NCBI GenBank assembly: GCA_963924565.1
Contig: OZ004609.1
Span: 32,364,001 to 32,428,000, forward strand
Direction: 5' to 3'
DNA length: 64,000 nucleotides
From: Ascidiella aspersa
Lineage: Eukaryota
Position numbers and translations under genes: made by a program. Below, piece by piece: positions 7,001 to 59,085 of this stretch; within the stretch, counting starts at the first letter, position 1, and each line of letters begins with the position of its first letter. The notes below the pieces were generated by a model. That model was not told the origin of the DNA. It searched no databases and worked only from the letters and a program-made list of their open reading frames with translations.

Positions 7001-10000
7001 ATGTCGTTTGACTGCAGCGGCACTTGCTTTTATACCGACGTCAACAAATCTAATAGCAAAAAAATAGACAAAGACCTCGCAAGGGAAAAATTGCACTACA
7101 AACGACAGGTGTGTATTTTTTATGTAATTAGAACTGGACTTGGCCAGTTTAGAACAGGATCTAAATTTAAGAACACAAAACAATAAACTTTGGCATTGAG
7201 CAAGTTTTTTTAAAAAGTTAATTTTTTTCAAAAAAAAATATTGCTAATTTAGGGAGGTTTACTGTTACACTCCTGACACTTAAAATATGTGTTATTGCTA
7301 TGGTAAAGTCAAAATTTTGCAATAAAATAGTGGTTTTCTCATATATGTAATGTAACTTATCATTTTGTTGTTTTTATTGAAACAAATATTAAACATTTGT
7401 TAAAAACAATTTTCTAGCATTTCCCATTGAATTTCCATTCTGGCAGTTTTAAAAAAATTTAAACGAAATGATACATCAAACCCCAACCAACAATAACTAA
7501 TTTTAACAAGGATCCCAGCACAACCACAAAGGTTGTAAAAAAGAATGAATTCGAATTAAGAATATTAGCAGAACTGACGATGCTTTTTGCGTAACTATAG
7601 TATTCTGCTTTTGTTGAATAAAGTTGTTTTGGATCTTTTTTACAACCTTTGTGGTTTTGCTTGAATCCTACGATATGGAGAAGATATCAACAACTAGCAA
7701 TGTTGGAGCAGGCTTAGATCCCAAAATTAACAAAAATAATAATAATATTATTATTATTTCATCAATTAATTTCAACAAAATGCCTAATTTTCATGCAGTA
7801 TATTGTTTTTTCCAGGTAAAGATTCTTCTCCTTGGTGCTGGTGAAAGTGGCAAAAGCACGTTTTTGAAGCAAATGAGAATTTTGCACGGGCACGGCTATG
7901 ATGAGAAGGCGAGACTTGGTTTCAGATCGACGATATACAGCAACATTGTAAAAGGCATGAAGGTGAGAGAAATGTCACTAAAAGCTAAAAAAATTAAACA
8001 TCAAAGTAAATAGCAAGTAAAACTCATAGTTAAAAACATGAGTAAAATCAGGATCAGACGTTTTGTTTAAAAGAAAAATATATTTCGCCAAGTGGCATTA
8101 TCAGTTAATTCAAATGAATCAGTAATATACGCCTCAGCAGAGCAGTGATCGACTGGCTTAAACCTGCCGCCGATGGTTTTGGATTCTATAAAGATACACC
8201 CTATTGTCAAAGTAAATAGAAGTAGTTTTAAGTCTTGTGTTTGAAAGTGCCATTGTATAACCTTTTGTATTTTGTTGACCATATAGTCTGTTTGTGTTGG
8301 AATTCTAAGCTAAGCCAACCAATTTTGGGTTTTTAAAATGCCATAAATTTTCGAGTTCACTTCATAAATAGATGTGGCAACCCTGGCCTGGAACTGTATT
8401 TCGTTTTAAATCACACAGCTTGTCATACAACCTGCATTCTCTATAGCTTTTGTTTTTGTATACAGAAATTCTCTAGGGTATTTTAAAACTAATGTCTTAA
8501 AAACATAGGTGTTAACTTGTCTTTATTTTAGCGTTTTTAAACAGTTTGACGTAAAATTTTCCCAGCCATCAACAACAAACAGAAGAGTTCAAAATAATGC
8601 TACACAACATTTTGCTGTTACAAGTTGCTTGAAAAACATAGTGAAAAAAGTTAACTAGTTTATATTTTTAAATTTGAAGGGTGGGTGCTTTTTATTATGC
8701 TCTTTCCAAAATGCAAATTGTGTTAGTTTTTTTTATACACAAATCATTAATCGATGAACTATCATCTTGCTACAGGCATGTGATCTAAAGTAAATCAGTT
8801 TCCTGTACCAGTGCGATGTCATGGTGTTACCCTGTATAAGTATATAAATAAATATAGTGCTGTTCCCATCCAGTTTGCCAGCCCAATGAAAGTTAATTAA
8901 AAGTTCAGCCAATTCTCTGAGAACAAACAGAGCATCGACGAGTTATATATTGTTGTAAGTAGCTGACTTATATGGGAAGTAGTGGCTTTGGAGGGGAAGT
9001 TCAATTGTTCTCCTGGCTTTGACTGATTGCCTTGCAGCCGACCATTCAGAGTTTAATTAATTAATTTCTGTTGAACTGATCAAAGTGATTTGCTGCTTTA
9101 CTTTTTGCTGATCAAGTTCCCCTGAACTAACGAAACACATAAGTTAATCTATTGGCGGTTACTGTTGAATCTAGTTTGTGGTATATTCGCTTAAAAGGGG
9201 TTTCCGAACCCCTCTATTTTTGCAAACCAAAGTAAAATGCCCAACAAAAACTGTTCTAGAATATATCAACTTTGTGGTATTACAATTCAACCTTTTTTTT
9301 TCTTTTCGAGTTTAAATGCTTCACATTTGTATTAGAATTACAAAGTATAATAACTTTAAGCTCACATCCCCAGCTTGTGGAACTAAAAGTGAAGGTTGGG
9401 GAGTTGGCGACCACCAGTCTTAAACCAATTAAAAATTCCATATTTTAACAATTATTAAGCTCTTTTTTTCTGTGCTCTTATGATGTTTTATTCCAATGAT
9501 TGAAAAAAAAAAACTTTTTTTTTCTTTTAAAATTTTTTTATAACCATCTAAAAATGATCATGTGTGTTTTTTGAATGTTTTTTTACAATGATTAAAAAAC
9601 GAAAATGTGTTTTTTCGTTATATTTTTCTATAGTTTTTCCGGATTATTTAAAAACAGTTAATTGTATTTGATATTTTTGTGTTTTTCTAATGTATCATAA
9701 TTAAAAACTGTTTCGTGTATTTTTAAATTATTTAAAAACAATTCTATGTTTTTAAGGTGTTGGTCGATGCAAGGGACAAGCTGCAGATTCCTTGGGAAGA
9801 TCCAAGTCGGCAGAGCCAGGCCGATTATGTGATGACCTTTGACCGGTACATGAACCTTGACGTGGACAACTTCATGAAGTACGTTCCGCACATCAAGGAG
9901 TTGTGGAAAGACGGCGGAATTCTTAACGCCTACGATAGAAGGAGAGAATTTCAACTGGTAAGTGCTTGTACTGACTAGCTTAGCAAATAAGATAAGAAAT

Positions 10001-25915: not shown

Positions 25916-26635
25916 ATGGATACTTCATCGTGGCGGGTACGTGTTTTGCTGGAGCCCCGCGGATTTATGCGCGCAATCGAGGTGATCCTTGCAATTGTCG
26001 CTTTTGCAACGACTGGAGGTTACCATAGTACGGCCGAATACACCATCAAATGCAATGCTACCTCCACGAAGACCTTTACCGCCACAGTCGATTACCCCTT
26101 CAATTTGCACACTCAGCCTGTGACCTTCACCAACTGCAGCGACAACACTGCCACTTTCATAATGGAAGGTGACCTCTCTCCTTCAGCACAATGGTTCATG
26201 TTCGTCGCCGTCACTGCTTTTCTCTACGCCCTTGGCTCGGTTGTCTTCTACGTTATGTTTGACGCCACTGTGCGACAGACCCATGAGCGAATAGTGACGA
26301 TTGGAGATCTTGCCGGCACCGTGATCTATGCCTTCTTCTGGCTGACCGCCGCCTCTGCATGGGCCTGGGGTCTTGGACAAGTCAAAGTGTGGACAGGCAG
26401 CGACAAAGTTTTCAAGAGTGACGCCTTGAGTATTTGCAGGAGTGGAGTTCAAGGTGTGTGCACTCAGACACAGTTCTATGACTACTCTCCGTTGAACGCG
26501 TCGGTTGCCTTTGCCTTCCTAAACTTCTTTCTGTGGGTGTGCAACGTCTGGTTCGTCTACAAGGAGTCCCCCTACCACATGGAACCGGACAAGCAGCCCA
26601 ACCAGTCTCAGCCACCCCCTCAAAACTTTCAGTAA
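25916..26635 (+). CDS. Synaptophysin/pantophysin-family MARVEL tetraspan vesicle protein (239 aa, intronless CDS)
   Basis: LLEPRGFMRAIEVILAIVAFATTGGY, YPF, S.SAQWFMFVAVTAFLY, FFWL..ASAWA.GL, LN.SV.F.FLN..LW..N.WFVYKE. Four TM helices with luminal Cys pairs; short P/Q-rich tail. Possible 5'UTR exon ending at 24932 (AG|GTAACT). Confidence 0.92.
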   Translation: MDTSSWRVRVLLEPRGFMRAIEVILAIVAFATTGGYHSTAEYTIKCNATSTKTFTATVDYPFNLHTQPVTFTNCSDNTATFIMEGDLSPSAQWFMFVAVTAFLYALGSVVFYVMFDATVRQTHERIVTIGDLAGTVIYAFFWLTAASAWAWGLGQVKVWTGSDKVFKSDALSICRSGVQGVCTQTQFYDYSPLNASVAFAFLNFFLWVCNVWFVYKESPYHMEPDKQPNQSQPPPQNFQ

Positions 26636-30002: not shown

Positions 30003-32706
30003 CTAGGAATACTTGACTCGCTTTGCGCTGCTCACACCCTCGTCAGCGTTTGAATCGGCCGCGCCGAAAAATCGCGGCGCAATTTCCTGCAGCCAGTGAG
30101 GCTCGACCACGGTCAGGTCCTTCATGAAGTGGTGCGAGGTGCGAACTATCTCCGAGTACACGACCCAGGCGGGCGGCGCGCGGAACGTTAGAACTGAGGA
30201 AGGGTGTAGGGCGAGGCTCTGGCCGTTCAGGAGGCCGCGGTAAGAGCCGTCCATCTGCAGCTGGGCGACGTTGGCGAAAAGACCCGAGGCGACGCACTTC
30301 TGAATTCGCTCCACCTCGTCGGTGCACGATATAAGCGCTATGTCCATCTTGTCGAGAAACTTGCGCAGCTGGTGCTTGCTTTTGACCGCCTGTTGCAGTC
30401 GGGAGTAGTTAAAGTGATTGCGCTTGCACCATCCGGGGTTGCTTGAGTTACCGTCGCTTGTGAAGGCGTTAAATACGTTTAATAGGGTCACGTGGTCGCC
30501 CTGTTCGACAGCGAACTTGCTGTGCGACTTGCGGACGGCCTTGCGCTGACTAGGAAAAAAAGACACGATTCCCTTGACCATGAGCATCGCCACGATGGTG
30601 ATGATCTCGCTGGAGCACCGGAACTTTTCCGAGTCGACAATCATCTTGACAAAGTGTGGCGCCAGGGGCAACTCGGACATGCGGCGCCCGTAGTTGCTGG
30701 TCAGGTTGCCTTCCTTGTCCAGAGCACCCATCGCGTAAAGGTACTCCAGCCCCCGCATCACAGAGTAGGCCGGTGGCGGCGACAGGAACTTGAAATTTAG
30801 GATGTTATCGACACCGAGCGCCTTCAGTCGGATGATGATGGGCACCAAGTTGCAGCGCTGTATTTCGGGCACCACAGATTCGGGCAAGTCATGCATCTGT
30901 GACTCTTCGAACAGCCGGTAAACCTTTCCAGTCCTTTAGTAAAAAAGAGTGAGTGAACAGAAACAATACAGTATCTAGAGTTCTTGACAAATATCCTACA
31001 GTAGACACACAGTTGTGAAGCTAACCATAAATAAACTTGTGTCAGTGTAAAGTCTGGCCATTTTTTAATTAACTGGAGATGTTACTTTTAATCAATAGGT
31101 TATATTTATTTCTTACAAAATATAAAGGAATTTAAGTATATATGAGGAAATAAATTTATAGAGATGCTTAACTCGGACATGAAACAAGTTATGCTATTAT
31201 CTGTATTATTTGTATATATAAATGTCTACTAAGTTTATGGTTCTGTCAAATCTATAATTTATTTTATACTTAGAGATCTTTGCTAAAAGTGTGTACTGTT
31301 TACAAACATTAGAAAAAAAAACTTTTTAAATAAAACTAAAAATGGCACAATATGAATTTATTTTAAATCAACCATCAATTTTTTCTTTCCAGACTATAAA
31401 AGTTAAATTAGACAATTGTTCAACTTTGCTAGGTTTCAAATATCAACTTTCTTCCTGGATTATATATGTACTCCAGTTAACGCTGTCACATCGGTAGTTA
31501 CTAAAATTATTAACATGCATATTGGTGGTCAAAAATTACATTTTCTAATATTGGAAATGCACTGCACTTATTTAAAAATTACCTAGTCCTGCCACATCTA
31601 CCAGCCCTTTGTTCTAACGAGGCCTTGGAGGCAGGACAAGTTACCACCGACTCTATGCTCGTCTCTGGATTGAACATCTTCATTTTCACAAATCCACAAT
31701 CGACAACAAAACCAATCCTTGGGATGGTGAGAGAGGTTTCCGCAACATTAGTGGATACAATTACTTTACGAACATGTTTCGGCACATGACCAAACACTTT
31801 GTTTTGTTCTGCCATTGGCAGCGAGGCATAAAGCGGAAAAATTGAGAGGTATTTTCCGGTGTTTGTCTCTGACCTCAAACCAACTTTCAAAAGCGTTGAG
31901 ACCTCTTCAACCTCTTGTTGCCCGGTAACAAAAGCAAGGATGTCTCCAGTCTTCTCGTTGAAGTGAATCTTTAATATCGTATCGGCTATTTGCTGGATAT
32001 AATTGGCAACCGGCAATGATGTGTAGAAGATTTCTGGCTGCAGTCTCTTAGTGGGGACCCAAAGGATACTGGCTGCATTAGGTGCTGCATTTTTACCGCT
32101 TTCAAAAAAGGCTTTCATTTTCTCTGCATCGTAAGTCGCAGAAGAGATAACAATGCGCAGGTCCGGCCTTTTCACCTGAATTTTTTTGAGCAATCCGAGA
32201 CACAAATCAGTACTGATGTTGCGCACATGTACTTCGTCGACGACAACAATGCAGAACTTTTTCAACGACGGATCTTTCATTATCTCCTGCAGCAGTATCC
32301 CATCTGTCATATATTTAATGGCGATTTCTTGGGGGTTGCAGCAATTTTCAAACCGAATTTCATAGCCAACCTCTTTTCCCAAAGTTGTGCCCATTTCATC
32401 GGCAACTCTGGAAGCAACAGAAACCGCCGCGATGTGGTTTGGTTGCGTTACGCCAATGCATGTCTTTCCCACATCCGGCCAACCAGCAGTGGCAAGGAAT
32501 TGTGGTATCTGCGTTGATTTACCACTTCCAGTTTCTCCTGAAACCACCACAGTGCGATATTGCTCGAGTAAATATAACAAGTGGTTGCGGCACTGGAAAA
32601 TCGGAAGGTCTTCCTTTTGTTTCGAGATGGACAGGGAAACGTAGCTTGATAGCGAACTCTGTTCGTTTCTGCGCTTTTGGGATGGTTTTCGATACCTCTC
32701 ACTCAT
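30003..32706 (-). CDS. DHX35: DEAH-box RNA helicase, DHX35-like (684 aa, 2 exons), divergent
   Basis: Exons 32706-31583 and 30933-30003 join in phase 2 (QRAGRCGRTR|TGKVYRLF). Motifs: GETGSGKSTQIPQ, DEVH, SAT, STNVAETSLTIP, QRAGRCGR, followed by HA2/OB-fold regions. N-terminus SLSISKQKEDLPIFQCRNHLLYLLEQYRTVVV resembles DHX35. Confidence 0.85.
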
Positions 32707-47734: not shown

Positions 47735-48273
47735 ATCTTAAATAAAGATGGCATAAATTGAACGAAATACAACATACCTCAATTATTGTGCTTTTCTTTG
47801 TGGGTACTTATTTAACTTCATGGCTAAACAACAACAATTATTACATATAATTTCCGAAAACAAGACGAAACAATTGCATACCATAAATTTTGTACCGGTC
47901 ATAAAATGCCAGCACGAGAAACTATCTTTGCTACTCTATTCTATGTTTCGCGTATTATTAATGATGATGCTCATATGCAGTGTTTACTGACCGAAACAGT
48001 CCCCAAAATTTCTCCAGCGGTTTCCCAAATTTTGGACTTGCAACTTTTTGGTATTTAAATGAAACACTTGCGGTCTCTTAAAACTACTTAGCGGTCACCC
48101 GAACCAAACCTTAAAAAAACCCTGCTGATAATTACTAACATTGGCCAACGTTCTATGGCTTGGAGAGTTTTGGCAAGCGGTATCTCCAAGTGAGAACTTA
48201 TTTCCACTAATCGATGTTTGACGAGGCACATTGGTGATAGTTGGTAATTGATGAGTAATAACAACAGGAAAAA

Positions 48274-48376
48274 GCTAAAACAGTCGAGTAGATCGACATC
48301 ATCTTGATTAGGACGTTTCGATACAAACTTGTATCATCTTCAGTTAAAGAGACCGTATCTACTCGACCTTTTTAGC
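48274..48376 (-). ncRNA. Hairpin element carrying a minimal hammerhead motif (Penelope-like pLTR remnant)
   Basis: Minus strand: CTGAAGA-tGATACAA gt TTGTATC-GAAA-CG-TC, enclosed by 20-bp inverted arms (GCTAAAA..GTCGAGTAGAT / ATCTACTCGAC..TTTTAGC). Stem I is weak. Confidence 0.6.
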
Positions 48377-48902
48377 CTTACAATTCAATTATCAAGCTAC
48401 ATTACAGATCCGTACTTGGTGTGCCCAAGGAGCAATAATGTTCCTGGATAATTTCTCCAGGATAATAAACCGCATTTTATCTTGTTTTATTAAAAATCAC
48501 TATATACCACTTGGGATATCCGTGTGCCTTCTCATATGAGTGGCAATCAAAAGAAGATTGATATGACATGAGATGTGAGGCAACTAGCATGATCAAGACG
48601 TTTAATCGCAAATTTGAAAAAAAAAAATAAATAAAAAAATATAAAAAATAAATCAAGGCGAATTTTTACGCAAAGTTTCCTCCGGATTATAATAGCTTGT
48701 GTGAAATCATTCGGCCCTCAAACCTAATCAACGTTACACTTGGATGGTAACTAGGGAGTCTTAGGTTCTTGATTACTGCTGATTGGCAGAAGTGTAAATT
48801 GTTTTCCTAAACTGAAACATTCATACACACATTCAGTATATTTTGTGACCAAGCTTTTCTCAAATCGTACTTATAACGACGCAAAAAGTATATAATAACA
48901 GG

Positions 48903-51900
48903 ATGCCTCCCGAAAGAGTTTGTTTGACTATTCCTGATTGTAGTGCAACCAAGGCTAGAAAAAAACTAGCCTGCGGTGAGGTTTGAACTCACGAACTCTG
49001 GTCTTACTGGAACAGTCGCTCTAGCGACAAGCAACGCAGGCTTTGCCAAAGCTGGTCAAGAAACTATCATACCAAATAACAATGTTTAGGTTGCTGAATA
49101 CAGGAGGTTGATACCCTTAAAATGAGGTTGTGTGTATGAGCACGATGCAGCGGGCCGGGGCTGCATAGTCGGTTAAAAAACAACCCAAATCCGATACCCT
49201 AGTCCGACTCCTGAGTCCGATTCCGGTTGAAAAAATAAACTGTCCCATTCCCAAATCACGAAACCAACACCGATCAATTTGTTGATTTCATCAAATCTCG
49301 GGTCCGGCTTCGACTCTATAGCCTATAATAATTAACGACAAAAAGGTGGGCATGGGCAGCAAAAAGGGTTGTAATTGAAGTCATCCATTCTGTTTTATTG
49401 TCGTCAATTAAGTGCCTTGTGCCAGTTGTCTTTCGAATATTGAAAAACGTCCAGTAGGTTTATCTTTGGATATCAGTGACGCATCTCACTTTAAAACTTA
49501 AGGAATGCGCATATTTGGCAATCTGCTAGAGCCTGTGGGTTTGTTCACCTTTACAAAAGGTCGTATGAGTTGTCAAATTAGCAAATGAATCAACTTTTGT
49601 TGAGCGAACTGAATGAATGGATATTTACGTCATTTACGGTGCAACAAGGAAAGAACTCTGTAACCTGCCTTTAACAAAGAGCTTAGAGTTCGATCAATGT
49701 CAGTTTATCGCAGGCGGTTTGTTGGTGTAAGGCAGAAGTTTTCAATCTGTACTTCGCGAACTGGTGCGTGGTTTTGATTGCATTTCGTATCTAAACTCAA
49801 CTGCGGTAAAATAACACTTGCAAATATTAGTAAATTACCTATTAAACCACTGCTGGAAAAAAAACACTGATGTAAGGGGTTGAGTGTGACAGGTTGTGCA
49901 TAGATTCGTTTTGAACTCTGATATATTATATAGTTTTTGATATCTATTACAATATACATTAGAGATACTTAGTAAGAATATCAAACCCCACAAAGAATTT
50001 AGTACATCATTTGGAACGTTTCGAATAAAGAGTTATGCGAAACTTTCAAAATAATACCTGGCCATTTGTGTATGGGTTTTGATATTCTTACCAGGACATC
50101 AACCCTTCTTTTAATAGCTGTGCATAAGCTTTAACATGTGCGAGTAAATATGGCTAAAGCACCCGACGTACAAGGCGAGGTCCTTCATAATGTTCAAGAA
50201 ATTAAATTGGTGAGATTTTGTGTTGAACTTAAAATAACAAAAAAAAATGTTTCGTGACAACTTATCCTTTTTATGGTTTTCAGAACGACGCAACTGTTAT
50301 CGCTGGTGGAGAATTTCACGTGCACATACATAACGAGGGCAAAGTTGTTGGTGAAGATGACGTCACTGCATTAGGTAAGATTATTTTCGTTGCTTGATAG
50401 TTTTGAATCGTAATCTGATAGAACATCAATGATCATTACTTGTTTGCTATTTAGATCGCTCATAAACATCGGGCAGTTTTATTATTTAGGCCAGTGGTTC
50501 TTAACCTTTGGCAACCTGTCGAACCCCTATGTCATTCTGCAAGCTTTTGTCGAACCCGAAAGTCGAAACCCTTTCGCTTAATATTCGTTTTATTCTCCTA
50601 GCAACTTAAACTGGGCACAATCAAATTATAAACTTGCATTTACATAGGTTAATTTGGCCGAACTTTCAATTTGTAACGTGACATGGCATATTGGCACATA
50701 AAAGAGATTCGAATTTTCTAGATTATTTTGCTGTTACTGATCAGGAATTAAGTTCGACATTTATCTTGCAAGGGTCAAGGTGATTTCTATTATTCACATA
50801 TTCAGTGCAACATTCGTAATGAATAGTGCGTATTTAGGTCTAAAATGCTTGCCTGTTTGCCTATTGGTAATATAAAAACCCTTTCCAAAAATTACAAAAA
50901 GTTTCGCGGCACACTTGACAATCTCTCGAGGCACACTAGTGTGCCGCGGCACACTGTTTGAGAATCGCTGATTTAAAGTATACCAAAGAGTCTACAAAAG
51001 GGGGTTTGCGATGTAACTATAACAACTCTTCAGTTAATGTGTTTAAACTAATGCAACTGTACAGCACTTTTTCAACCTAATCAAAGCTATTTTAATTGAT
51101 TCTCAGATGCAATGTTGCGAGCGAACCAGAGAGTGGTGGCCAACATCAAAGTCAAATCTCAAGAAACAGTCTTAGTTAAACTTTTGGTTGTTCACAGGAA
51201 GGATGTCAAACTAGAAGATTTGCACGAATTGTTAGTCTCTAATTACAATGAGAAAAATGCTACCTTTCTTGATGTTCATCAATTGCGTCCGGCTGCAAAC
51301 GGAAATGCCATTAAAGAAGCCAAATCTAAATTTAGCAACCAGACAGCGAAAGATAATTACATTGCAAAACATGGTCTCTTTATAGCCATCACCGGAGGAG
51401 CTGGCTATGGCAAAACCACCTTAGGGATACAAATTCTGCAACATGCGAGTGAAACTCTGCCTGAATCTGGTTACCTTTTCCACGAAAACCTGCCATCATT
51501 GGACAACAGCAAAGATATGAGCGTTCTCGAGTTTCTGATAAAGCTCTCCTACCCAAACTGGCAATATTATTTGGAAACAGATAGTAAAATTCTGGAAAAA
51601 ATCTCAAAATGCAATACCGTGTGTATAATCTTCGATGGATTGGACGAAACGGGTTTTAATCTCTCAATGAAAGCGCCAGTTATAGGTTTGTACGACAGAG
51701 CAAAGCCAGAAGTAATTTTCCAAAACCTTGTCCGAGGCGACATTTTGCCAAATGCGTTCAAGTATCTAATTACGCGGCCGGAAGCATATTTACAGTTGAA
51801 CCCAGATTGCAAGTCGCACTTCCCACTTGAGGTAATTGGTCTGAGCGAAAATTCACAAGATTTGCTTTTCAAAGAAATTTGCCAAAGTCAAAAGAAATAC

Positions 51901-54900
51901 AAAAAGGTAAAAGAGGTTCTAAATCAAAATCCAGCCGCCAAGGCGTTATGCTGCATTCCACTATTTGCCAAAGCAATTCCGAAATACATTTTAAGGCACG
52001 GGTTAAAGGATTGTGCTTTTACTACTACTGATGTGTTTACATCTTTTTTGAATGACTACATCCGTTCAGCTCATTTCAAAAATCACCCAAGTGTCCTTCG
52101 CAAGCTCTCTGAATTAGCTTTATACGGAATGCTTAATAAGAAATTCACATTTGAAGCACAAGATGTTGCCAATGCTGGACTTGAAACAGAAGGTTTGAAA
52201 GATTTTCTCAAAGTTCAAGTTCAGTCCAGTGATATCAGCCTTAAATGTCTAGAAGGGGACAAGCTAATATTATTCAATCACCGACTACTATACGAGTTTT
52301 TCACTGCACTTAAGATTATGTTTGACACCCCTTTGAAGCGGTTTTCAGCGCTACTGGAAAACTTCAAAAGTGACAAGTGGGAAATGGTTCTTCAATTTAT
52401 ATTGGGTCTGCTCAATCCGGAACTCCATGGCAAGCTAAAGGCGCTGTTTCCAATCTTTCTAGCTGATATTGCTGACAAAAGAGGCTTGCTCAAGGAACTG
52501 ATTGTGTCGATGGCTAAAGATTTTTCCTTAACTTCTGTAAAGGATCTTCCAGTTCCACTAGTGTCACTATTTAGGCTCGGCGTCGAAGATGTTGCAAAAT
52601 GGCAAGAGTTTCAGGCTCGTCCTAGAGACAACAGGTTGTTTAAACTGTGCAGTCTCACCTACGAATCCATGGACTCTGAGCTTACTAGAGCAGTGGTCGA
52701 AGTTTTGCCAGACATGGTTTTGCTCTCCCGCACGATTCTTCCCGGCCACGTGGCAAGTCTCTGTCACGTGCTTCGCTCCACCGACAAACCAATCACCATC
52801 AACGTTGGAGCTTACGGGGAACAAGCAAAGTTCATCGGGGATGGACTAAACATGTTGATCAAGACCGTGGCTGAAACACCACACACGGTTTGTTCTTAAT
52901 CTAATAATGAGCTTGGATTTATTACTAAACAAACCGCATTTAACGCTATTTGGATTAATTACCAAACAAACACTGTTTTTAATGCCGGTATACCAAAAAA
53001 AATCGCGCTCGCTTCGCTCGCCAGGTGTGCCTTAGCTTAAAAGGTTAACAAACACCGAGATGCATTAACTTCAAATGTTATCGCGTTCCCTCAAAGTAGT
53101 TTTATTACACTTTTCATCAGAAGTATGGAAGACGACATGTGAACTCGAACTTTAAACCAACCAAACGCTTTGCGCCAACACTCTACTGCCTCCTTAAATG
53201 TAATTAAACATGTTTTTAAGTGCAAAAATGATCCGAGGCCCGGATGATTCACACTTTTTCTAACATGAAAACATCACAATTCTTAATTATCATTTTGTGC
53301 GGCCCGCAGAGATCTTTCTTAGTTTGGTTTTGGCCCGCGACTAGAAAAAGGTTGCCGACCCCTGGTTTAACATGATAAATGAAAAGCATTCCACTTCTAC
53401 ATAGCTTTGGGACAACATGTCACATAATTGTTTAGCTCTCATTTTGCTACATTTAAGATCCGCAAGTTCCACGTAGATGAGGCCACCATCAGCATTGCAA
53501 CGTTAGCACCACTTATTCCACAAATGGAAGAATTAGCGATCTTGGACAGCAGCCTTTCTGTTGAGGACATCAAACTTATCTCAAAAAGCCTGCGAAGGAA
53601 AACACGACCGGTAAAATATAATTTATATTAGAACTTATGTCGAGTTTCAAACGAAAGTAACTGCATAGGATTTATCTATGAGTATTGCGTACTCTATATG
53701 ATTTATCGCTTTTATCATTTGCTTAACTACCATGATTGTAGCACCAAGGTTATGTAAGTGTGTTGTTCTTGTAGCTAGTGCGTAATTTGGTTCCGCAATG
53801 TTACGTTTTCAGTTTTGGGGACCTCTCTACATACAAAGTTTATAGTGCGTTAGTTTTAGTTGCTACATCCTCAATACTTTTAAATTATTTGGTTTACTTA
53901 AAGATTTTAGTATGGTACCAACTAGGGATGTCCGATAATATCGGATCGGAGCCGATACCGAAAGAATGTGGCGATGTTTATCTTAAAAGACAAATTTATC
54001 AAAATTACTAGGTTAACTACTTAAATTAACTTGTTAACGCTAAAAGCCAGTTTTCGCATAATACTTTTAAACGTTTTAATCTTAACTATTTAGCTTACAT
54101 GAGCAATGAGCATAGTAGTGACATCACTTAGTATTGGATCGGGTTGCATTTATTTATTAAAATATCGGATTAAAATGTCAAGCATCGAAACATCCACAAT
54201 ACTTACTGTCACGTCAGTTATGTATTTTTCCTATTACGACACAACATATACAGTCATCCTGTCTAACCAACCTTTCATCTATAGCAGCGGTTCCAAAACT
54301 GGGTTCCGCGGACCAAATGGGGTCCGTACAGCAGTTTCAGAGGGTCCGCAAGGAGAATTAGTCTTTAAGTTTTTCAATATTATAGGCTTTTTTAAAAATT
54401 TTAATCTATGTTTTAAAAAATATCTGTCATCATTATTGTCTTTGGTTATACATTATTATTCGTTCATATAGCTTGTTTTATGATGACATCACAAAGCATC
54501 TATTATGCTATATTACCTGCTATCAGCGAATCGTTCGCATTCGTTAAAAAGTTGTTACATTAGAAAGAATCGTGACTGGACTAGTGTTACTACAAGAAAC
54601 ATGGGTCAACTGACCCTTGAATTTTTATAGGGCCGCGAAATATCAAAATAATTGCAACGGGTCACCAGGCAAATTTTTTAGAAAAGTTTGGGAACCGCTG
54701 ATCTATAGTACTTGATTTTTGTATGTAGATTGAGTTTCTTGACTTGAGCTTTAACGATCTGAATGAAGCTGGTGTAAAGCTGCTATCCAGGTGCATCCCC
54801 TACATTAAGAGGCTTGAGCTCATGCAATGCGGAATCACATCCGACAATCTCTTGGTGTTGACGAGCAGCATCGAGCAACGACAAAGTCCCGTAAGTTTCA

Positions 54901-57900
54901 ATAAAGCGTTATAGTTTATCCAAGTACGCCCGACTAAATATTGGATCTTAGCCGATATCGTGTGATATTATTGACACTATAATTTACCATAAGGCAAATA
55001 TTTGAAGGATTGGATTAATTGTGAGTCTCATTAATGTCTTTGCCGGATGAATTAACCTAACTTCTCCAAGGTAGCGATAGATTGTAGAAAATTGTTCATT
55101 CCGTTGTTGTCCGACTCAGATAAAATATATCCTCTCATTTTCGTTGGCTTAAAGTGAGCCAGCAAGCGGTCTGTAACCGTTCTGTTTATTGACTGACCAC
55201 TCAAGTTTGCTGCTGAGCTAAAAGGCATTTTTATTTGATTTAGAAATGCATAAAGAAGGCAACACGTGATATACGTAATCAATTTCTAAATAATTGTAAC
55301 TTATTACGTATAGCAAATCACATGTCAAAGGACATTGCTATAAGTCATTTTTCTCGACTTTGTCTTATACGCGGAAATATAATTTCTGTCCAAATACGGT
55401 TTCAACAAAAGCCCTGACTTCATATAAACAATAAACAATACAACGGATACTGGCCAACACCTATATCTGATACTAAAAATATCGATGTGTTTACTGAATG
55501 GCGATTTAAACCATGTGGTTAGCAATAAACGGATATGCGTAAGAACTCGCACACCTTCTCGCTAGGCGGAAATTTGTGTCAGAAAAGGTATTTTGCATTA
55601 TTCTTGCTAGGTTGTCAATGGGCATTTTTTAGAAATTTTCCATTGCGACATTTTAACAGTGTTGAAAAACGAATTCTTTGTGAAAATAACAATTTGACGC
55701 TACATATTCAACCAACCAAAATTTTGGTGATCGTTAACGCAATGCTGGTTTCAAACTCTTGGTAATTTCTGTTGGCCAAAGCTCCTTGTGTTTGTGCAGA
55801 TGGACTCGTTGGACCTAAGTAAAAACAAGATCGGGTCACGTGGTGTATGTTGCCTGGCAACAAGTGCGCACAAAGTAAACAACCTGATGTTGGGAGATTG
55901 TGGAATCAAGGAAGTTGGAGCACTGACTGAAGCGATCTCACGCAGGGAGGATCCGGTAAGTGACCTCATCTAAACTCGATCGTGGCTTCCGATGAGGGTC
56001 CACGGATTCACCCTGGATGGGTGGTAGCAGGTGGTCATACCAGATTGGAAAGTTTGGCCTGCGTGGTATTTAGCATAAACTATATTACAGCCACGCGAAT
56101 TTTAACATAGACTATACAGTCGAGCAGATATGAGCATGAAATATATTACAGCCGCGCTAATTTTAAGCTGTTTAAACATCTCCCCCACGCAATTAAGTCT
56201 CCTATATCTGTTGGTCCGATAAGCATATTTAATAAAATTTAAACGCGCAAACATAATGTCATCTAGGTGACTAGAACTAAATTCTATGCTATTTTCTGAG
56301 AAACTCACGTACAACCGACAGGTTAAATTCTTTTTTCACATTGTTGCGGACAGCGGGGTGGTTGCTATGTTGTGTCGCCACACATTGTGGTTCAACGACT
56401 CAGTGTGTCCTCATGCCCCGCCACCCCTGGTTCGCTTGTGCTTTGGTTATTAGTTACTAATCACTGTGGTTTATCGTAATGCGATAAATCACATTTTTAG
56501 CCTTGACCAGATAAAATTTCACGTAAGGCAAATAAGTAAACCCAGCACTTGGAGCCTAAAGCGAAATATAGACATTAACAAAACTGTCATTTCGATTACA
56601 TTAAAAACATTTCGAATATCAAATCCAATGAAGCTTAATAATTTAGGGCTTATGGCGAAGATATATTTCACGCATAAACAGCACTAGAAATAAAAATCTT
56701 TTCGTATATTGCAATCACGTATGTTTTACTGTTTTAAATTCCTTTTGAGAATGATGGTTGCTATTGTTGTTCCGTGTTCAAGTTTATTTCTGATAGCTTA
56801 ACCTCCTTGTTTTTAAACAGATGGATTTGTTGGATCTGGATAAAAACAAGATAGGATCACGTGGTGCTCATTTCCTGGCAACAAGTGTGAACAATTTGAA
56901 CAAGCTGTGGTTGAGAGATTGTGGAATCGATGAAATTGGAACACTGACTGAAGCAATCGCACGCCGGGAGCATCCAGTAATTAAATTACCTGACCTAAAC
57001 TCGGTTTAATGGTTTGGCATAAATTTTTCCCACATTGATTGTAAACGTAATTTGTGGTAAAATTCACCCCACATATTGTTGTCCAAATATATGCAGCCTA
57101 TTGTTTATTGCGCAAAGCTAGGAATTGCGCTAAAAGCTGCCCAGAAGAATTTCCATTAAGCAAACTTTGCCCTAACGACCTGGCAAAAATACCTCTAGGA
57201 GAATATGTACGAGTCGATTGTTTAGTGTTGTTTAGTTCAGTGCTTCTTAAACTTTTTTAGTTTTGTTCACCCCTATCATCTATCTCCAGATTTCATTCAC
57301 CCTTGTCTCATGATATGATAAAACTATCTTGTCTATATATACCAGCACAAAATGAACACCCGGAATATCCGCCCTGCTCGCAAGCTATCATCCATTTCTG
57401 ACGGTTCACCTTTATTCACCCCTTTTGGTTGGTTCACCCCCGCTAATATTTATTCACCCTGGGGTGAACCATTCACCTGATTAAGAAACACTGGTTGAGT
57501 TGACCTCAGTGATAACTTATTTTGATATCGGATCAAAGTCGAACAAGGCCGGATCCGGGATTCTGTATTTTAAATTGGGTATTAGATGAACCATCATTTG
57601 TTGTACCAATATTAGGTTAAGTTTTTATAGTAATTATTTTCGCCCGAAAACGGCAGTTGGTTAGTCGATCGTAAGCTTCGGTTGGCGCGAAAATCCTCCT
57701 ATCTCGGTCAATATTACTTCCCTCATCTAGCGTTTGTTTTGGTCAACAACAATCACGAGTATAGGAAAGTTCGTTGTATAACCTCTTGTTGCAATTGTTG
57801 TCAGATGGAATATCTAAGTATCCGTAACAATCCTCTCGGCGACCGCGGGGCCAGTGCGTTGGCAAAATGTCGGGGAAAGATTGGAAGGTTAGGTAGCGAA

Positions 57901-59085
57901 AACTGCAACTTCACGTCAGCTGGGGAGCACGAACTTGAATCGGCAGAGCAGTTTAACAGAGTAAGAACTTATTTCAACTATTGCACCTAAAACCATCGCA
58001 GACTCACCGACATTGAAGGGGTCTATAGTTCTATCATTATACAATACATACACAAACGTGAACAACAAGTGTGATCTAGCCCAGTGGTTCTCGAAGTTTT
58101 TTTCAAATTTCTTCCTTAAAAGCCCAAATACTTTTAATTCTTCCACCCAAAAAACGCAAGGTACCGGTACTCTACCTTTTTTATTTGTTACTTTGGTGTA
58201 TTTTCGATGTGCTAATCGTCTGAAATGTTGGTTTGTTTCAATGTATAACGTAGGTATTGATGAATTACCCATGTAAAATTCCTGCATTGGTTTTTATTTC
58301 CTTAATGGCTGTAGGCCTAATTGTGAAGAAACAATGGACTAATAGGTAACTGTGAACAAACAACTTTTTCCTCCCCAATTCCTCCCTGGAAAAAATTTCC
58401 TTCCAAAATTTAAAAATTCCTCCCTAAGGGAGCCAAGTGGCTCACTTTGAGAACCACAGATCTAACCCTTCTGAAGTCGCTTTTTGACCAACTATACTGG
58501 CTTATATATCATAGCGCACTGAAAGCAATGCCAGACTAACCGTATCCGTGGATAAATGATGTAAGTAAGCAGGGCTAGAAAAAACTAGCCTGCAGTGAGG
58601 TTCGAACTCACGACCTCCGACTTATTTCAACTAGTCGGGTTTGACGAGGCACATTGGTTATATAGTTGGGCAAACTAACAGGTTTTTTGTTTTGGGGTGC
58701 CATGAAAGGCATTTCGAGATGACGCCACAAAGTTACATGACAGCGTTACGTCAAAACGTTGCTTTACAAAGACGTTATTGAGTATATCGTTTGAATTGTG
58801 AAAACTTTTATTTTCGAGGGTCCTATAAAACGCACGACGCCTTTGGATTAACAATTTCAACAAAACGGACTAAGACATACCAGAAATATAATTCAGATTC
58901 GAGCGAAATGCGAAAAGTTTTTGCATTTGCTAGGTTAAAATGGGAAAAAATAATATTTGCTGGATGATTCAATATTTTACTGACTAAGTATATAAGTAAA
59001 CTAAATTCTGGCTCGTGTTATCAACATACATCATGTTTTTTACCAGGAAAATCGACCAATCAAGAAACGAGTAAACGTCACGTGA
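48903..59085 (+). CDS. NACHT-LRR (NLR) innate immune receptor, ~902 aa, no death-fold N-terminal domain
   Basis: Exons 48903-48917 (tentative), 50284-50374, 51107-52887 (NACHT), 53458-53610, 54729-54890, 55800-55955, 56821-56976, 57805-57960 (phase-0 LRR exons), 59047-59085 (tentative terminal exon; AATAAA at ~59283). Walker A GGAGYGKTT, Walker B CIIFDGLDE, sensor ITRP, CIPLF, winged-helix FNHRLLYEFFTA; RI-type LRRs LDLSxNxLxxxG. Confidence 0.88.
48951..49041 (-). mobile_element. tRNA-derived SINE copy in NLR intron 1
   Basis: GGCTAGAAAAAAACTAGCCTGCGGTGAGGTTTGAACTCACGA...GTCGCTCTA...GCAGGCT. Confidence 0.75.
49970..50092. repeat. Inverted-repeat hairpin element with a degenerate hammerhead-like loop
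   Basis: GTAAGAATATCAAACCCA...TGGGTTTTGATATTCTTAC arms enclose AACGTTTCG-AATAAGAGTTATGCG-AAAC. Confidence 0.45.
50492..50970. mobile_element. hAT-type MITE, possibly composite
   Basis: CAGTGGTTCTTAACC at the left end; GGCACACTAGTGTGCCGCGGCACACTGTTTGAGAATCGCTG at the right end. Confidence 0.6.
52980..53364. mobile_element. Partial inverted copy of the 40207-40904 hAT element
   Basis: Reverse-complement similarity, ending CTAGAAAAAGGTTGCCGACCCCTG. Confidence 0.8.
54285..54700. mobile_element. hAT-type MITE
   Basis: TIR CAGCGGTTCCAAAACT...AGTTTGGGAACCGCTG; perfect 8-bp TSD ATCTATAG. Confidence 0.88.
57238..57493. mobile_element. hAT-type MITE with TTCACC(C) subterminal repeats
   Basis: TIR CAGTGCTTCTTAA...TTAAGAAACACTG; TSD GTT(T/G)AGTT. 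Confidence 0.8.
58082..58459. mobile_element. hAT-type MITE
   Basis: TIR CAGTGGTTCTCGAAGT...ACTTTGAGAACCACAG; TSD ATCTA(G/A)CC. Confidence 0.8.
58567..58620 (-). mobile_element. 5'-truncated tRNA-derived SINE copy
   Basis: AAGCAGGGCTAGAAAAAACTAGCCTGCAGTGAGGTTCGAACTCACGACCTCCG. Confidence 0.75.

Follow-up and report, generated by a model that had tools for sequence, protein, structure and literature searches.

Other NLRs signal through CARD, PYD, or death domains. Ascidian NLRs have none of these, and the locus described here raises the question of what stands in their place. The window (the whole stretch of 64,000 nt that was analysed) carries an NLR gene on the + strand, for which the initial annotation proposed a prion-like amyloid signal encoded by an N-terminal micro-exon. 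We examined the structure of the gene, the sequence and distribution of the micro-exon among the paralogues, and the roles that the encoded peptide might have. The exons were searched and modelled singly, and only the coding length was counted for the joined model.

NACHT-LRR body and 5′ end of the gene

The large exon at 51107–52887 (+ strand, 1781 nt) encodes the pre-NACHT region, NBD, HD1, WHD, and HD2. Pfam assigned NACHT (2e-12, above its cut-off) and NOD2_WH (6.6e-8) to this exon, and the P-loop GGAGYGKT begins at its residue 96, with the G, K, and T columns invariant in the alignment. The AF2 model of the exon had a pTM of 0.77, and the best PDB matches of the model in Foldseek were NOD2 and NLRP3 (E 1e-19 to 1e-20). 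The closest database relatives were NLRs of Clavelina and Ciona. Five exons of 153–162 nt with an open frame follow on the + strand: a post-NACHT or first LRR-region exon at 53458–53610 (153 nt, splice sites and open frame, no Pfam match), LRR exons at 54729–54890 (162 nt) and 56821–56976 (156 nt), both recognised from splice sites and open frame, an LRR exon at 55800–55955 (156 nt) with a weak LRR_6 match, and the last LRR exon seen, at 57805–57990, which also matched LRR_6 weakly and whose frame stays open up to a stop codon that ends at 57990, with a possible donor AGA|gtaaga after 57960. The LRR_6 matches were below the cut-off (E about 1e-3), and the repeats are RI-like by eye. A C-terminal CaaX (prenylation) exon was sought 3′ of 57950, and none was found. 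These results, in agreement with the annotation as an animal NLR, indicate that the locus is the 5′ end of an intact NACHT-LRR gene in a tunicate-like genome. The genome contains at least 150 NACHT exons, and the window gene is a dispersed member of this lineage-specific expansion.

The motif micro-exon (exon 2) occupies 50284–50374 (+ strand) and its 91 nt comprise 30 codons and the first base of a split Asp codon. It is flanked by a ttttcag| acceptor and a |gtaag donor, both read in the sequence, and the donor joins in phase 1 to the start of the NACHT exon at 51107. At least 29 paralogues have the same acceptor, phase-1 donor, and exon ends, and BLASTP matched both ends to exon 2 of a C8 paralogue (E 4e-5 and 1e-3). 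In paralogues the acceptor position is the same and the donor phase is again 1, with exon lengths of 76, 103, 139, and 250 nt. Furthermore, the 29 nt preceding the acceptor align to the C8 paralogues (query positions 116–183), and the NACHT exon acceptor ttctcag|ATGCA was kept in all 29 paralogues examined. Judged by its sequence, the 91-nt exon is real, as first annotated.

The start of the reading frame had been placed in a 15-nt ATG exon at 48903–48917 (+ strand). This exon showed no conservation in any paralogue search, and the RNA depth was a negligible 0.16 in its repeat-rich bin. A 60-nt exon at 50150–50209 (+ strand; 20 codons, ATG to TTG|gtgaga) fits better as the first coding exon on sequence grounds, and it is separated from exon 2 by a 74-nt phase-0 intron at 50210–50283 (+ strand; gtgaga...ttttcag). 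An in-frame TAA lies at 50132–50134, five codons 5′ of its ATG. The ATG, the 60-nt length, and the GTGAG donor are the same in the paralogues L036 and L037; the window exon is 70% identical in DNA to C8:390470 and C8:315190, and a genome search gave 36 paralogue copies. Since the exon at 50150 accounts for the 5′ end, the 15-nt exon lies outside the gene model, and the N-terminus therefore starts MAKAPDVQGE... rather than MPPER. This corrected 5′ gene model puts about 146 residues before the P-loop in place of the roughly 130 counted earlier. In one RNA run, of which about 6% was sampled, approximately one read-equivalent was seen in each of the bins 50000–50199 (in sense orientation), 51400–51599, and 52200–52399, with no junction reads; this coverage is too thin for the splices of the model to be confirmed by RNA. 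Deep RNA signal at 48000–48400, 50400–51000, and 53000–53390 corresponds to high-copy repeats.

No death-fold or other Pfam match was obtained with exon 1, exon 2, or the pre-NACHT segment, and no usable + strand ORF longer than 56 aa was present 5′ of the gene within 47.5–50.15 kb. In the AF2 model, residues 1–53 of the NACHT exon had pLDDT values below 50, which is read as disorder; two helices connect this part to strand 1. The N-terminal PYD or CARD that defines the NLRP and NLRC subfamilies was not found. The description of the gene as an NLR that has no recognisable death-fold domain was thus borne out, and it agrees with the report that ascidian NLRs have no N-terminal domain and are bare NACHT-LRR proteins (PMC11508797).

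Exon 2 module among the paralogues

In the window gene, exon 2 encodes a cap, the residues H-I-H-N-E, and a tail. The cap is kept in the paralogues as N-[ND]-A-[TI]-[VI]-[FI]-[AP]-G-[GA]-E-[VF]-H-[LV]. There it precedes TEVTQNINV or TEVRNV units, which differ in number from copy to copy, and an acidic ..GNVV.ADDVTA-type tail. The pattern ATV[IF]AGGE[FV]H[LV] gave 30 matches in the genome and 1 in the control. A second subfamily (C7) has an exon at the same position and in the same phase, with the sequences G-D-V-Y-G-H-Q, G-P-I-Q-N-L-H, and G-D-V-H-I-Y; its pattern gave 37 matches and no control match, and a further genome search gave 62. The motif core of the window gene, G-G-E-F-H-V-H-I-H at 50305–50331 (+ strand), corresponds to G[GA]EVH[LV]T in the C8 paralogues, to HGDVHIY in C7, and to YGDVNIH in a C6 copy, the match of the C7 and C6 cores to it being positional and visual, not statistical. 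The exon 2 versions of the two subfamilies share the core G-[DE]-[VF]-[HN]-[VIL]-[HYT]. The subfamilies also share the cap, the phase, and the exon position, though their NACHT exons are only 50–75% identical, and the reading frame is open in every exon 2 copy listed.

As first noted, a micro-exon of its own encodes the short motif. Exon and core are kept across paralogues, and comparison of the copies indicates that exon 2 is a family-specific N-terminal module with a core common to about 100 paralogues in two subfamilies. Two features that the initial annotation had read as amyloid-like, the G-G turn and the alternating F-H-V-H-I-H run, are not conserved: the G-G pair is G-A in 23 of the 29 paralogues, and the H-x-H-x-H of the run is unique to the window gene, the C8 paralogues having T-E-V-T-Q there. 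The exon can be as short as 76 nt and as long as 250 nt (25 to more than 83 aa) because it encodes tandem repeats of the TEVTQNINV type. Such variability could mark a tolerated low-complexity region that has no function, and the C7 copies may be nearly identical through recent duplication or gene conversion and not through constraint.

All copies that could be placed (30 C8-type and 62 C7-type) are NLR-linked, with a NACHT exon 1.2–13 kb downstream on the same strand when the coordinates were compared by hand. Within the window, a regular-expression search found the motif in the exon itself and nowhere else. Because a NACHT exon follows every placed copy, the genome searches revealed no non-NLR carrier; their reach was about 40% identity or more over 30–80 aa, and a short diverged partner motif would escape them. 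Conservation and partnership, which had been named among the points on which the amyloid proposal would stand or fall, gave different answers: the core is conserved among the paralogues, which does not refute the proposal, and the separate effector sharing the motif did not appear, which points against it.

Several candidates were rejected individually. An apparent orphan motif at C6:31280345 is NLR-linked: its NACHT exon lies 6.3 kb downstream, on the far side of a retroelement. The H-x-H-x-H matches at C3:21032251, C5:22818859, and C9:9921009 lie in sequence that does not resemble coding exons, the pattern match at C9:21954797 is non-coding, and weak matches at C9:9.45–9.53 Mb are probably satellite. 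No motif exon was present within 1.5 kb 5′ of the NACHT exon in 29 paralogues, where intron 2 is 7–13 kb. The N-terminus of a Clavelina NLR appeared similar by eye, but BLASTP gave no support and a search with the region returned the query only. A profile built from the C6 and C7 versions of exon 2 was run against 1.84 billion proteins and gave seven matches, each spread over 5–14 stretches. Six of the seven were scanned with Pfam: five were bacterial-type Ig-like, Listeria-Bacteroides-repeat, or TPR proteins, and one was domainless. The profile matches are repeat-driven, and no true relatives were seen among those scanned.

Possible roles of the N-terminal module

We consider it probable, though by no means assured, that the gene encodes a NACHT-LRR protein in which the micro-exon module takes the place of the death fold and acts once the NACHT domains oligomerise. 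In the gene model, two micro-exons (60 and 91 nt) come first, then the large NACHT exon, and then the LRR exons. The exon 2 module would form a short acidic tail, mostly unstructured and prone to beta strands, at the site where vertebrate NLRs have a PYD or CARD. Regarding the mechanism, we infer that oligomerisation of the NACHT domains would gather the module copies, which could then associate strand to strand or recruit a non-homologous adaptor; the module is not thought to template a look-alike motif on a separate effector. Under this interpretation, the 50-residue N-terminal tail is a concrete candidate for the missing output end of ascidian NLRs.

It is possible, if less likely, that these 50 residues have no signalling role and are a low-complexity leader or linker left after effector loss, or a regulatory or autoinhibitory tail, with output through other NACHT-LRR surfaces. 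The repeat-driven length variation of exon 2, the failure to find relatives or partners, and the disorder of the modelled pre-NACHT region are consistent with this, as is the general description of ascidian NLRs as bare NACHT-LRR proteins (PMC11508797). However, a dispensable leader does not readily account for the cap, phase, and exon position kept between the diverged subfamilies, for the open frame in every copy listed, or for an exon 1 held at exactly 60 nt.

The proposal of the initial annotation was that exon 2 encodes a prion-like amyloid motif, so that oligomerised NLRs seed a cross-beta fold, which in turn templates this motif in a separately encoded cell-death effector, on the model of fungal NWD2/HET-S, the bacterial BASS pairs, and RHIM proteins. 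In its favour, the NLR has no death fold and carries a short motif at its very N-terminus, the core is kept in about 100 paralogues, and there is the precedent of an amphioxus NACHT protein in which a RHIM replaces the death fold (PMC4262963). The composition resembles that of known amyloid signalling motifs, the exon 2 peptides having Q+N+G+V+I fractions of 0.43–0.49 and K+P+L fractions of 0.02–0.19; enrichment in Q, N, G, V, and I with depletion of K, P, and L has been reported for amyloid signalling motifs and for beta-helical proteins (bioRxiv 10.1101/2020.01.06.895854). The bias is non-specific, and the peptides are strongly acidic. Against the proposal are the absence of a non-NLR carrier in the window and in the genome searches, the lack of conservation of the G-G and H-x-H-x-H features, the repeat-driven outcome of the profile search, a net charge of −4 to −9, and an exon 2 of 25 to more than 83 aa where known motifs are length-conserved at about 25 aa. 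Moreover, no amyloid-motif family was returned when the exon peptides of the window gene and of the C8 and C7 types were compared with all of Pfam-A by hmmscan (E values up to 10); the exon peptides have no Pfam family and therefore no RHIM or other amyloid-motif entry. The I/V-Q-I/V-G core tetrad of RHIMs is absent from exons 1 and 2, and the RHIM model (PF12721) gave scattered matches over the whole genome (E 0.2 or worse), none of them at NLR exons, which agrees with the apparent lack of RHIMs in tunicates (PMC4262963). A four-copy complex prediction of the exon 2 peptide scored 0.02, which has no bearing either way. Nothing found shows the exon 2 motif to be an amyloid signal. This reading at present has no positive support; it is therefore neither refuted nor backed, and we regard it as unlikely.

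A broader version, in which the G-[DE]-hydrophobic-[HN]-hydrophobic module is a functional-amyloid or beta-arch nucleation motif, new and specific to tunicates, acting between NLR paralogues or on a partner too short or diverged for detection, is doubtful as well, if a shade less so. If true, such a motif would have taken over from death folds and RHIMs alike in an NLR repertoire that has expanded greatly.

An incomplete gene model, with further upstream exons encoding a death-fold or other effector domain, is very unlikely: the RNA coverage is too low to define the 5′ end, but the exon 1 ATG is kept in paralogues behind an in-frame stop, the 2.6 kb upstream contain high-copy repeats and no candidate ORFs, and the RefSeq model of the nearest database relative has a short N-terminus and only NACHT-associated Pfam domains. 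We give almost no weight to the H-V-H-I-H run as a metal- or pH-sensing element instead of a structural motif: its three His residues alternate with hydrophobic ones and His also occurs in the C7 and C6 versions, but the run itself is confined to the window gene and its exon peptide has no Pfam match.

Comparison with known systems

The window gene shares the NACHT fold with vertebrate NOD2 and NLRP3. The genes of these proteins have small 5′ exons, one large NACHT exon, and LRR exons of about 156–171 nt, a layout that the window gene resembles. NOD2 and NLRP3 carry a CARD or PYD, whereas the window gene has two micro-exons encoding 50 residues instead.

A short N-terminal NLR motif is also a feature of the fungal NWD2/HET-S (HRAM), PP, and sigma systems and of the bacterial BASS1–10 NLR/Bell pairs, and the V/G/N/Q/I-rich, K/P/L-poor composition of the window motif, though non-specific, resembles theirs. 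The HRAM, PP, sigma, and BASS families are defined by a motif common to the NLR and the effector of an adjacent gene. In contrast, no such effector gene and no Pfam family was found for the window motif, and the module is strongly acidic and varies widely in length.

The amphioxus RHIM-NACHT protein BF82280 has a short beta motif in the place of the death fold (Kajava et al. 2014, PMC4262963). Both it and the window gene are thus invertebrate chordate NACHT genes with a short motif at this position; the window motif differs in having neither the I/V-Q-I/V-G core nor a match to the RHIM model. Amphioxus RHIMs also occur on non-NLR partners, whereas none was seen for the window motif.

The NLRs of Ciona intestinalis and the 'NLRP3-like' NLR of Clavelina lepadiformis are, like the window gene, NACHT-LRR proteins with a short N-terminus that has no Pfam domain, though the identity is only 25–29%. 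We know of no earlier description, in ascidian NLRs, of a conserved motif encoded by an N-terminal micro-exon. The motif seems to be new; NACHT-LRR proteins that have no effector domain were already known (PMC11508797). About 16 NLRs are tabulated for Ciona (PMC8455134), compared with the at least 150 NACHT exons of the genome studied here, in which the exon 2 module recurs across about 100 NLR paralogues and its placed copies lie only upstream of NACHT exons.

Gene structure and N-terminal exons

The gene and both of its N-terminal micro-exons are real, with the first exon corrected. The NACHT exon begins at 51107, directly 3′ of ttctcag, and contains 593 open codons, which matched Pfam NACHT (2e-12) and the NOD2 winged helix (6.6e-8); 3′ of it are five exons of LRR type whose splice sites are clean. 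The exons were searched and folded one by one, by reference, rather than as a joined protein, and the AlphaFold2 model of the NACHT exon (pTM 0.77) matched NOD2 and NLRP3. The nearest database proteins, with an identity of only 25–29%, were NLRs from two ascidian genera, Clavelina and Ciona, and the genome is accordingly taken to be tunicate-like. Exon 2 (50284–50374, 91 nt) was read in the sequence as ttttcag/AAC GAC ... TTA G/gtaag, and a GAT codon is split between its last base and the first two bases of the NACHT exon. These results indicate that the gene is an animal NLR in which a 91-nt exon joins the NACHT exon, as the initial annotation described. A possible strong donor (AGA/gtaaga, 57960–57966) was observed 27 nt ahead of the stop in the last LRR exon, and a further small 3′ exon is therefore possible; a simple search downstream of that LRR exon found no CaaX exon.

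The 15-nt ATG exon originally placed at 48903–48917 is arbitrary, and an exon at 50150–50209 is the better candidate for exon 1. It runs for twenty codons from an ATG at 50150, ends in phase 0 with TTG/gtgaga at 50209, sits 74 nt 5′ of exon 2, and is preceded by an in-frame TAA five codons ahead of the ATG. A genome DNA search with 50140–50380 gave two matches in a tandem NLR cluster on contig C8, each covering exon 1 and the beginning of its intron; in the fetched C8 copies the ATG and a gtgagt donor are placed as in the window, and the exon measures exactly 60 nt. The paralogue exon 1 occurs in 36 copies in the genome, 32 of them in the C8 cluster, where each copy paired with an exon 2 lies 0.2–7 kb upstream of it. 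With exon 1 at 50150, the N-terminus begins MAKAPDVQGE..., with approximately 146 residues ahead of the P-loop instead of the approximately 130 first counted. Two further C8-type copies (89% identity) were found on the + strand at C6:31538512 and C6:31936410, with no listed NACHT exon near them. In a single RNA run, of which approximately 6% was sampled, about one read-equivalent fell in each of three exon bins, including 50000–50199, all oriented as a + strand transcript predicts; the same sample contained no junction reads, and the depth was only 0.16 in the repeat-rich bin containing 48903–48917.

Pfam matched nothing in either micro-exon or in the 94 residues that precede the P-loop, and no + strand ORF longer than 56 aa was found in the 2.6 kb upstream, a stretch in which high-copy repeats are present. 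In the AlphaFold2 model of the NACHT exon, residues 1–53 had a pLDDT below 50; two helices then connect them to NBD strand 1. The three analyses concur with the initial view that the gene has no recognisable death-fold domain, which agrees with the published architecture of ascidian NLRs, containing NACHT-LRR or NACHT only (PMC11508797).

Exon 2 among NLR paralogues

Exon 2 is a conserved exon of the family. The NACHT-exon acceptor ttctcag/ATGCA is kept in 29 paralogues whose NACHT exons are 72–75% identical to that of the window. The motif exon was absent from the 1.5 kb upstream of these NACHT exons because intron 2 is 7–13 kb there. We searched the whole genome and a control with back-translated A-T-V-[IF]-A-G-G-E-[FV]-H-[LV], allowing up to 3 mismatches, and obtained 30 matches versus 1: 27 in the C8 cluster, one at C3:6468011, and the window itself. 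The remaining match, on C9, was non-coding. The fetched C8 copies of exon 2 share the acceptor, begin N-N-A-T-V-F-A-G-[GA]-E-V-H-[LV], and measure 76, 103, 139, and 250 nt, all 3n+1 with a phase-1 donor. The added length consists of tandem TEVTQNINV and TEVRNV units, a coding minisatellite (L042:105–353, − strand; also L032–L035 and L048–L052, all fetched pieces) with a copy number that varies among C8 paralogues, so that the exon, always 3n+1, ranges from 76 nt to at least 250 nt. Long forms also carry the tail ..GNPGNVVEADDVTAR. Alignment of the window exon with the long form covers both ends of the latter (E 4e-5 and 1e-3); it is the C8 exon lacking the repeats, which are replaced by H-I-H-N-E.

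In the C7 subfamily, whose NACHT exons are approximately 52% identical to that of the window, a motif exon with a phase-1 end lies 1.2–4 kb upstream of the NACHT exon and reads ..NIGDVYGHQGPIQNLHGDVHIYGQ.., and the complete C6 version has D-E-N-A-V directly after the acceptor. Aligned by eye, G-G-E-F-H-V-H-I-H of the window appears to correspond by position to G-[GA]-E-V-H-[LV]-T in C8, H-G-D-V-H-I-Y in C7, and Y-G-D-V-N-I-H in C6. An apparent orphan motif at C6:31280345 was rejected, as a NACHT exon lies 6.3 kb downstream; a retroelement ORF (gag, protease, and RT-like by eye; L046:2228–3397, − strand) in intron 2 of this paralogue displaced it to that distance.

The features stressed initially, a GG turn and an alternating H-x-H-x-H run, are not conserved: 23 of the 29 paralogues have GA in place of GG, and the run has no counterpart in any paralogue, other near matches in the genome lying only in sequence of non-coding appearance. 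Near-identical copies of a GC-rich stretch, reading ..HHEGGEFHVHDHHHAVHG.. in one frame, were also observed on two chromosome-scale contigs away from NLR context (L039, C3:21031850–21032650; L040, C5:22818460–22819260).

Role of the motif exon

The motif exon is a conserved module, confined to NLR genes among the copies that could be placed, and its most likely role would be that of an output end, or association end, for the receptor. NACHT oligomerisation would gather several copies, and the module would then act.

It is unlikely, and supported by none of these results, that exon 2 templates a similar motif carried by a separate effector, in the manner of fungal HRAM, PP, and sigma and bacterial BASS, in which a motif of approximately 25 residues, rich in Q/N/G/V/I and poor in K/P/L, is common to the NLR N-terminus and a next-door effector (bioRxiv 10.1101/2020.01.06.895854). 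The composition of the exon peptides (Q/N/G/V/I 0.43–0.49; K/P/L 0.02–0.19) fits this bias, which is not specific, but the peptides are strongly acidic, with a net charge of −4 to −9. A loose regex found only exon 2 itself in the window, and genome searches with the window, C8, and C7 exons (all 62 candidates scored for the last) and two patterns gave NLR-linked copies, the remaining pattern matches being in sequence that looks non-coding. Each placeable copy was on the same strand as, and upstream of, a NACHT exon, with coordinates compared by hand. The motif exon is kept among NLR paralogues, as had been anticipated, and the expected non-NLR carrier was absent among the placed copies. With a profile built from the C6 and C7 exons, seven matches were obtained in 1.84 billion representative proteins; six were examined and were repeat-driven, in unrelated proteins. 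Membership in a known amyloid-motif family was not borne out either: no exon peptide matched a Pfam family, and the RHIM model gave only scattered matches across the genome (E of 0.2 or worse), none of them at NLR exons. RHIMs seem to be missing from tunicates, and an amphioxus NACHT protein carries a RHIM where the death fold would be (Kajava et al., PMC4262963), which provides a chordate precedent for the general idea.

Genomic setting of the gene

The window also contains a G-alpha exon (7624–8013, + strand), a single-exon MARVEL-domain ORF of 239 aa (25916–26635, + strand), and a helicase of the DEAH type in which DEAD, Helicase_C, HA2, and OB_NTP_bind domains were matched (30003–32706, − strand). 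High-copy repeats were seen both upstream of the NLR gene and in its introns (48000–48400, 50400–51000, and 53000–53390), with a DNA word depth of 1e4–4e5 versus approximately 70 elsewhere and RNA reads on both strands. The searched genome (308 Mb, 75 contigs) contained at least 150 NACHT-exon matches in large tandem arrays with a spacing of approximately 30–50 kb, located at C8:0.3–1.77 Mb, at C7:0.3–1.7, 2.4–6.65, 25.3–26, and 30.7–31.4 Mb, and on C6. The motif module belongs to a very large ascidian NLR expansion, whereas about 16 NLRs have been tabulated in Ciona (PMC8455134).
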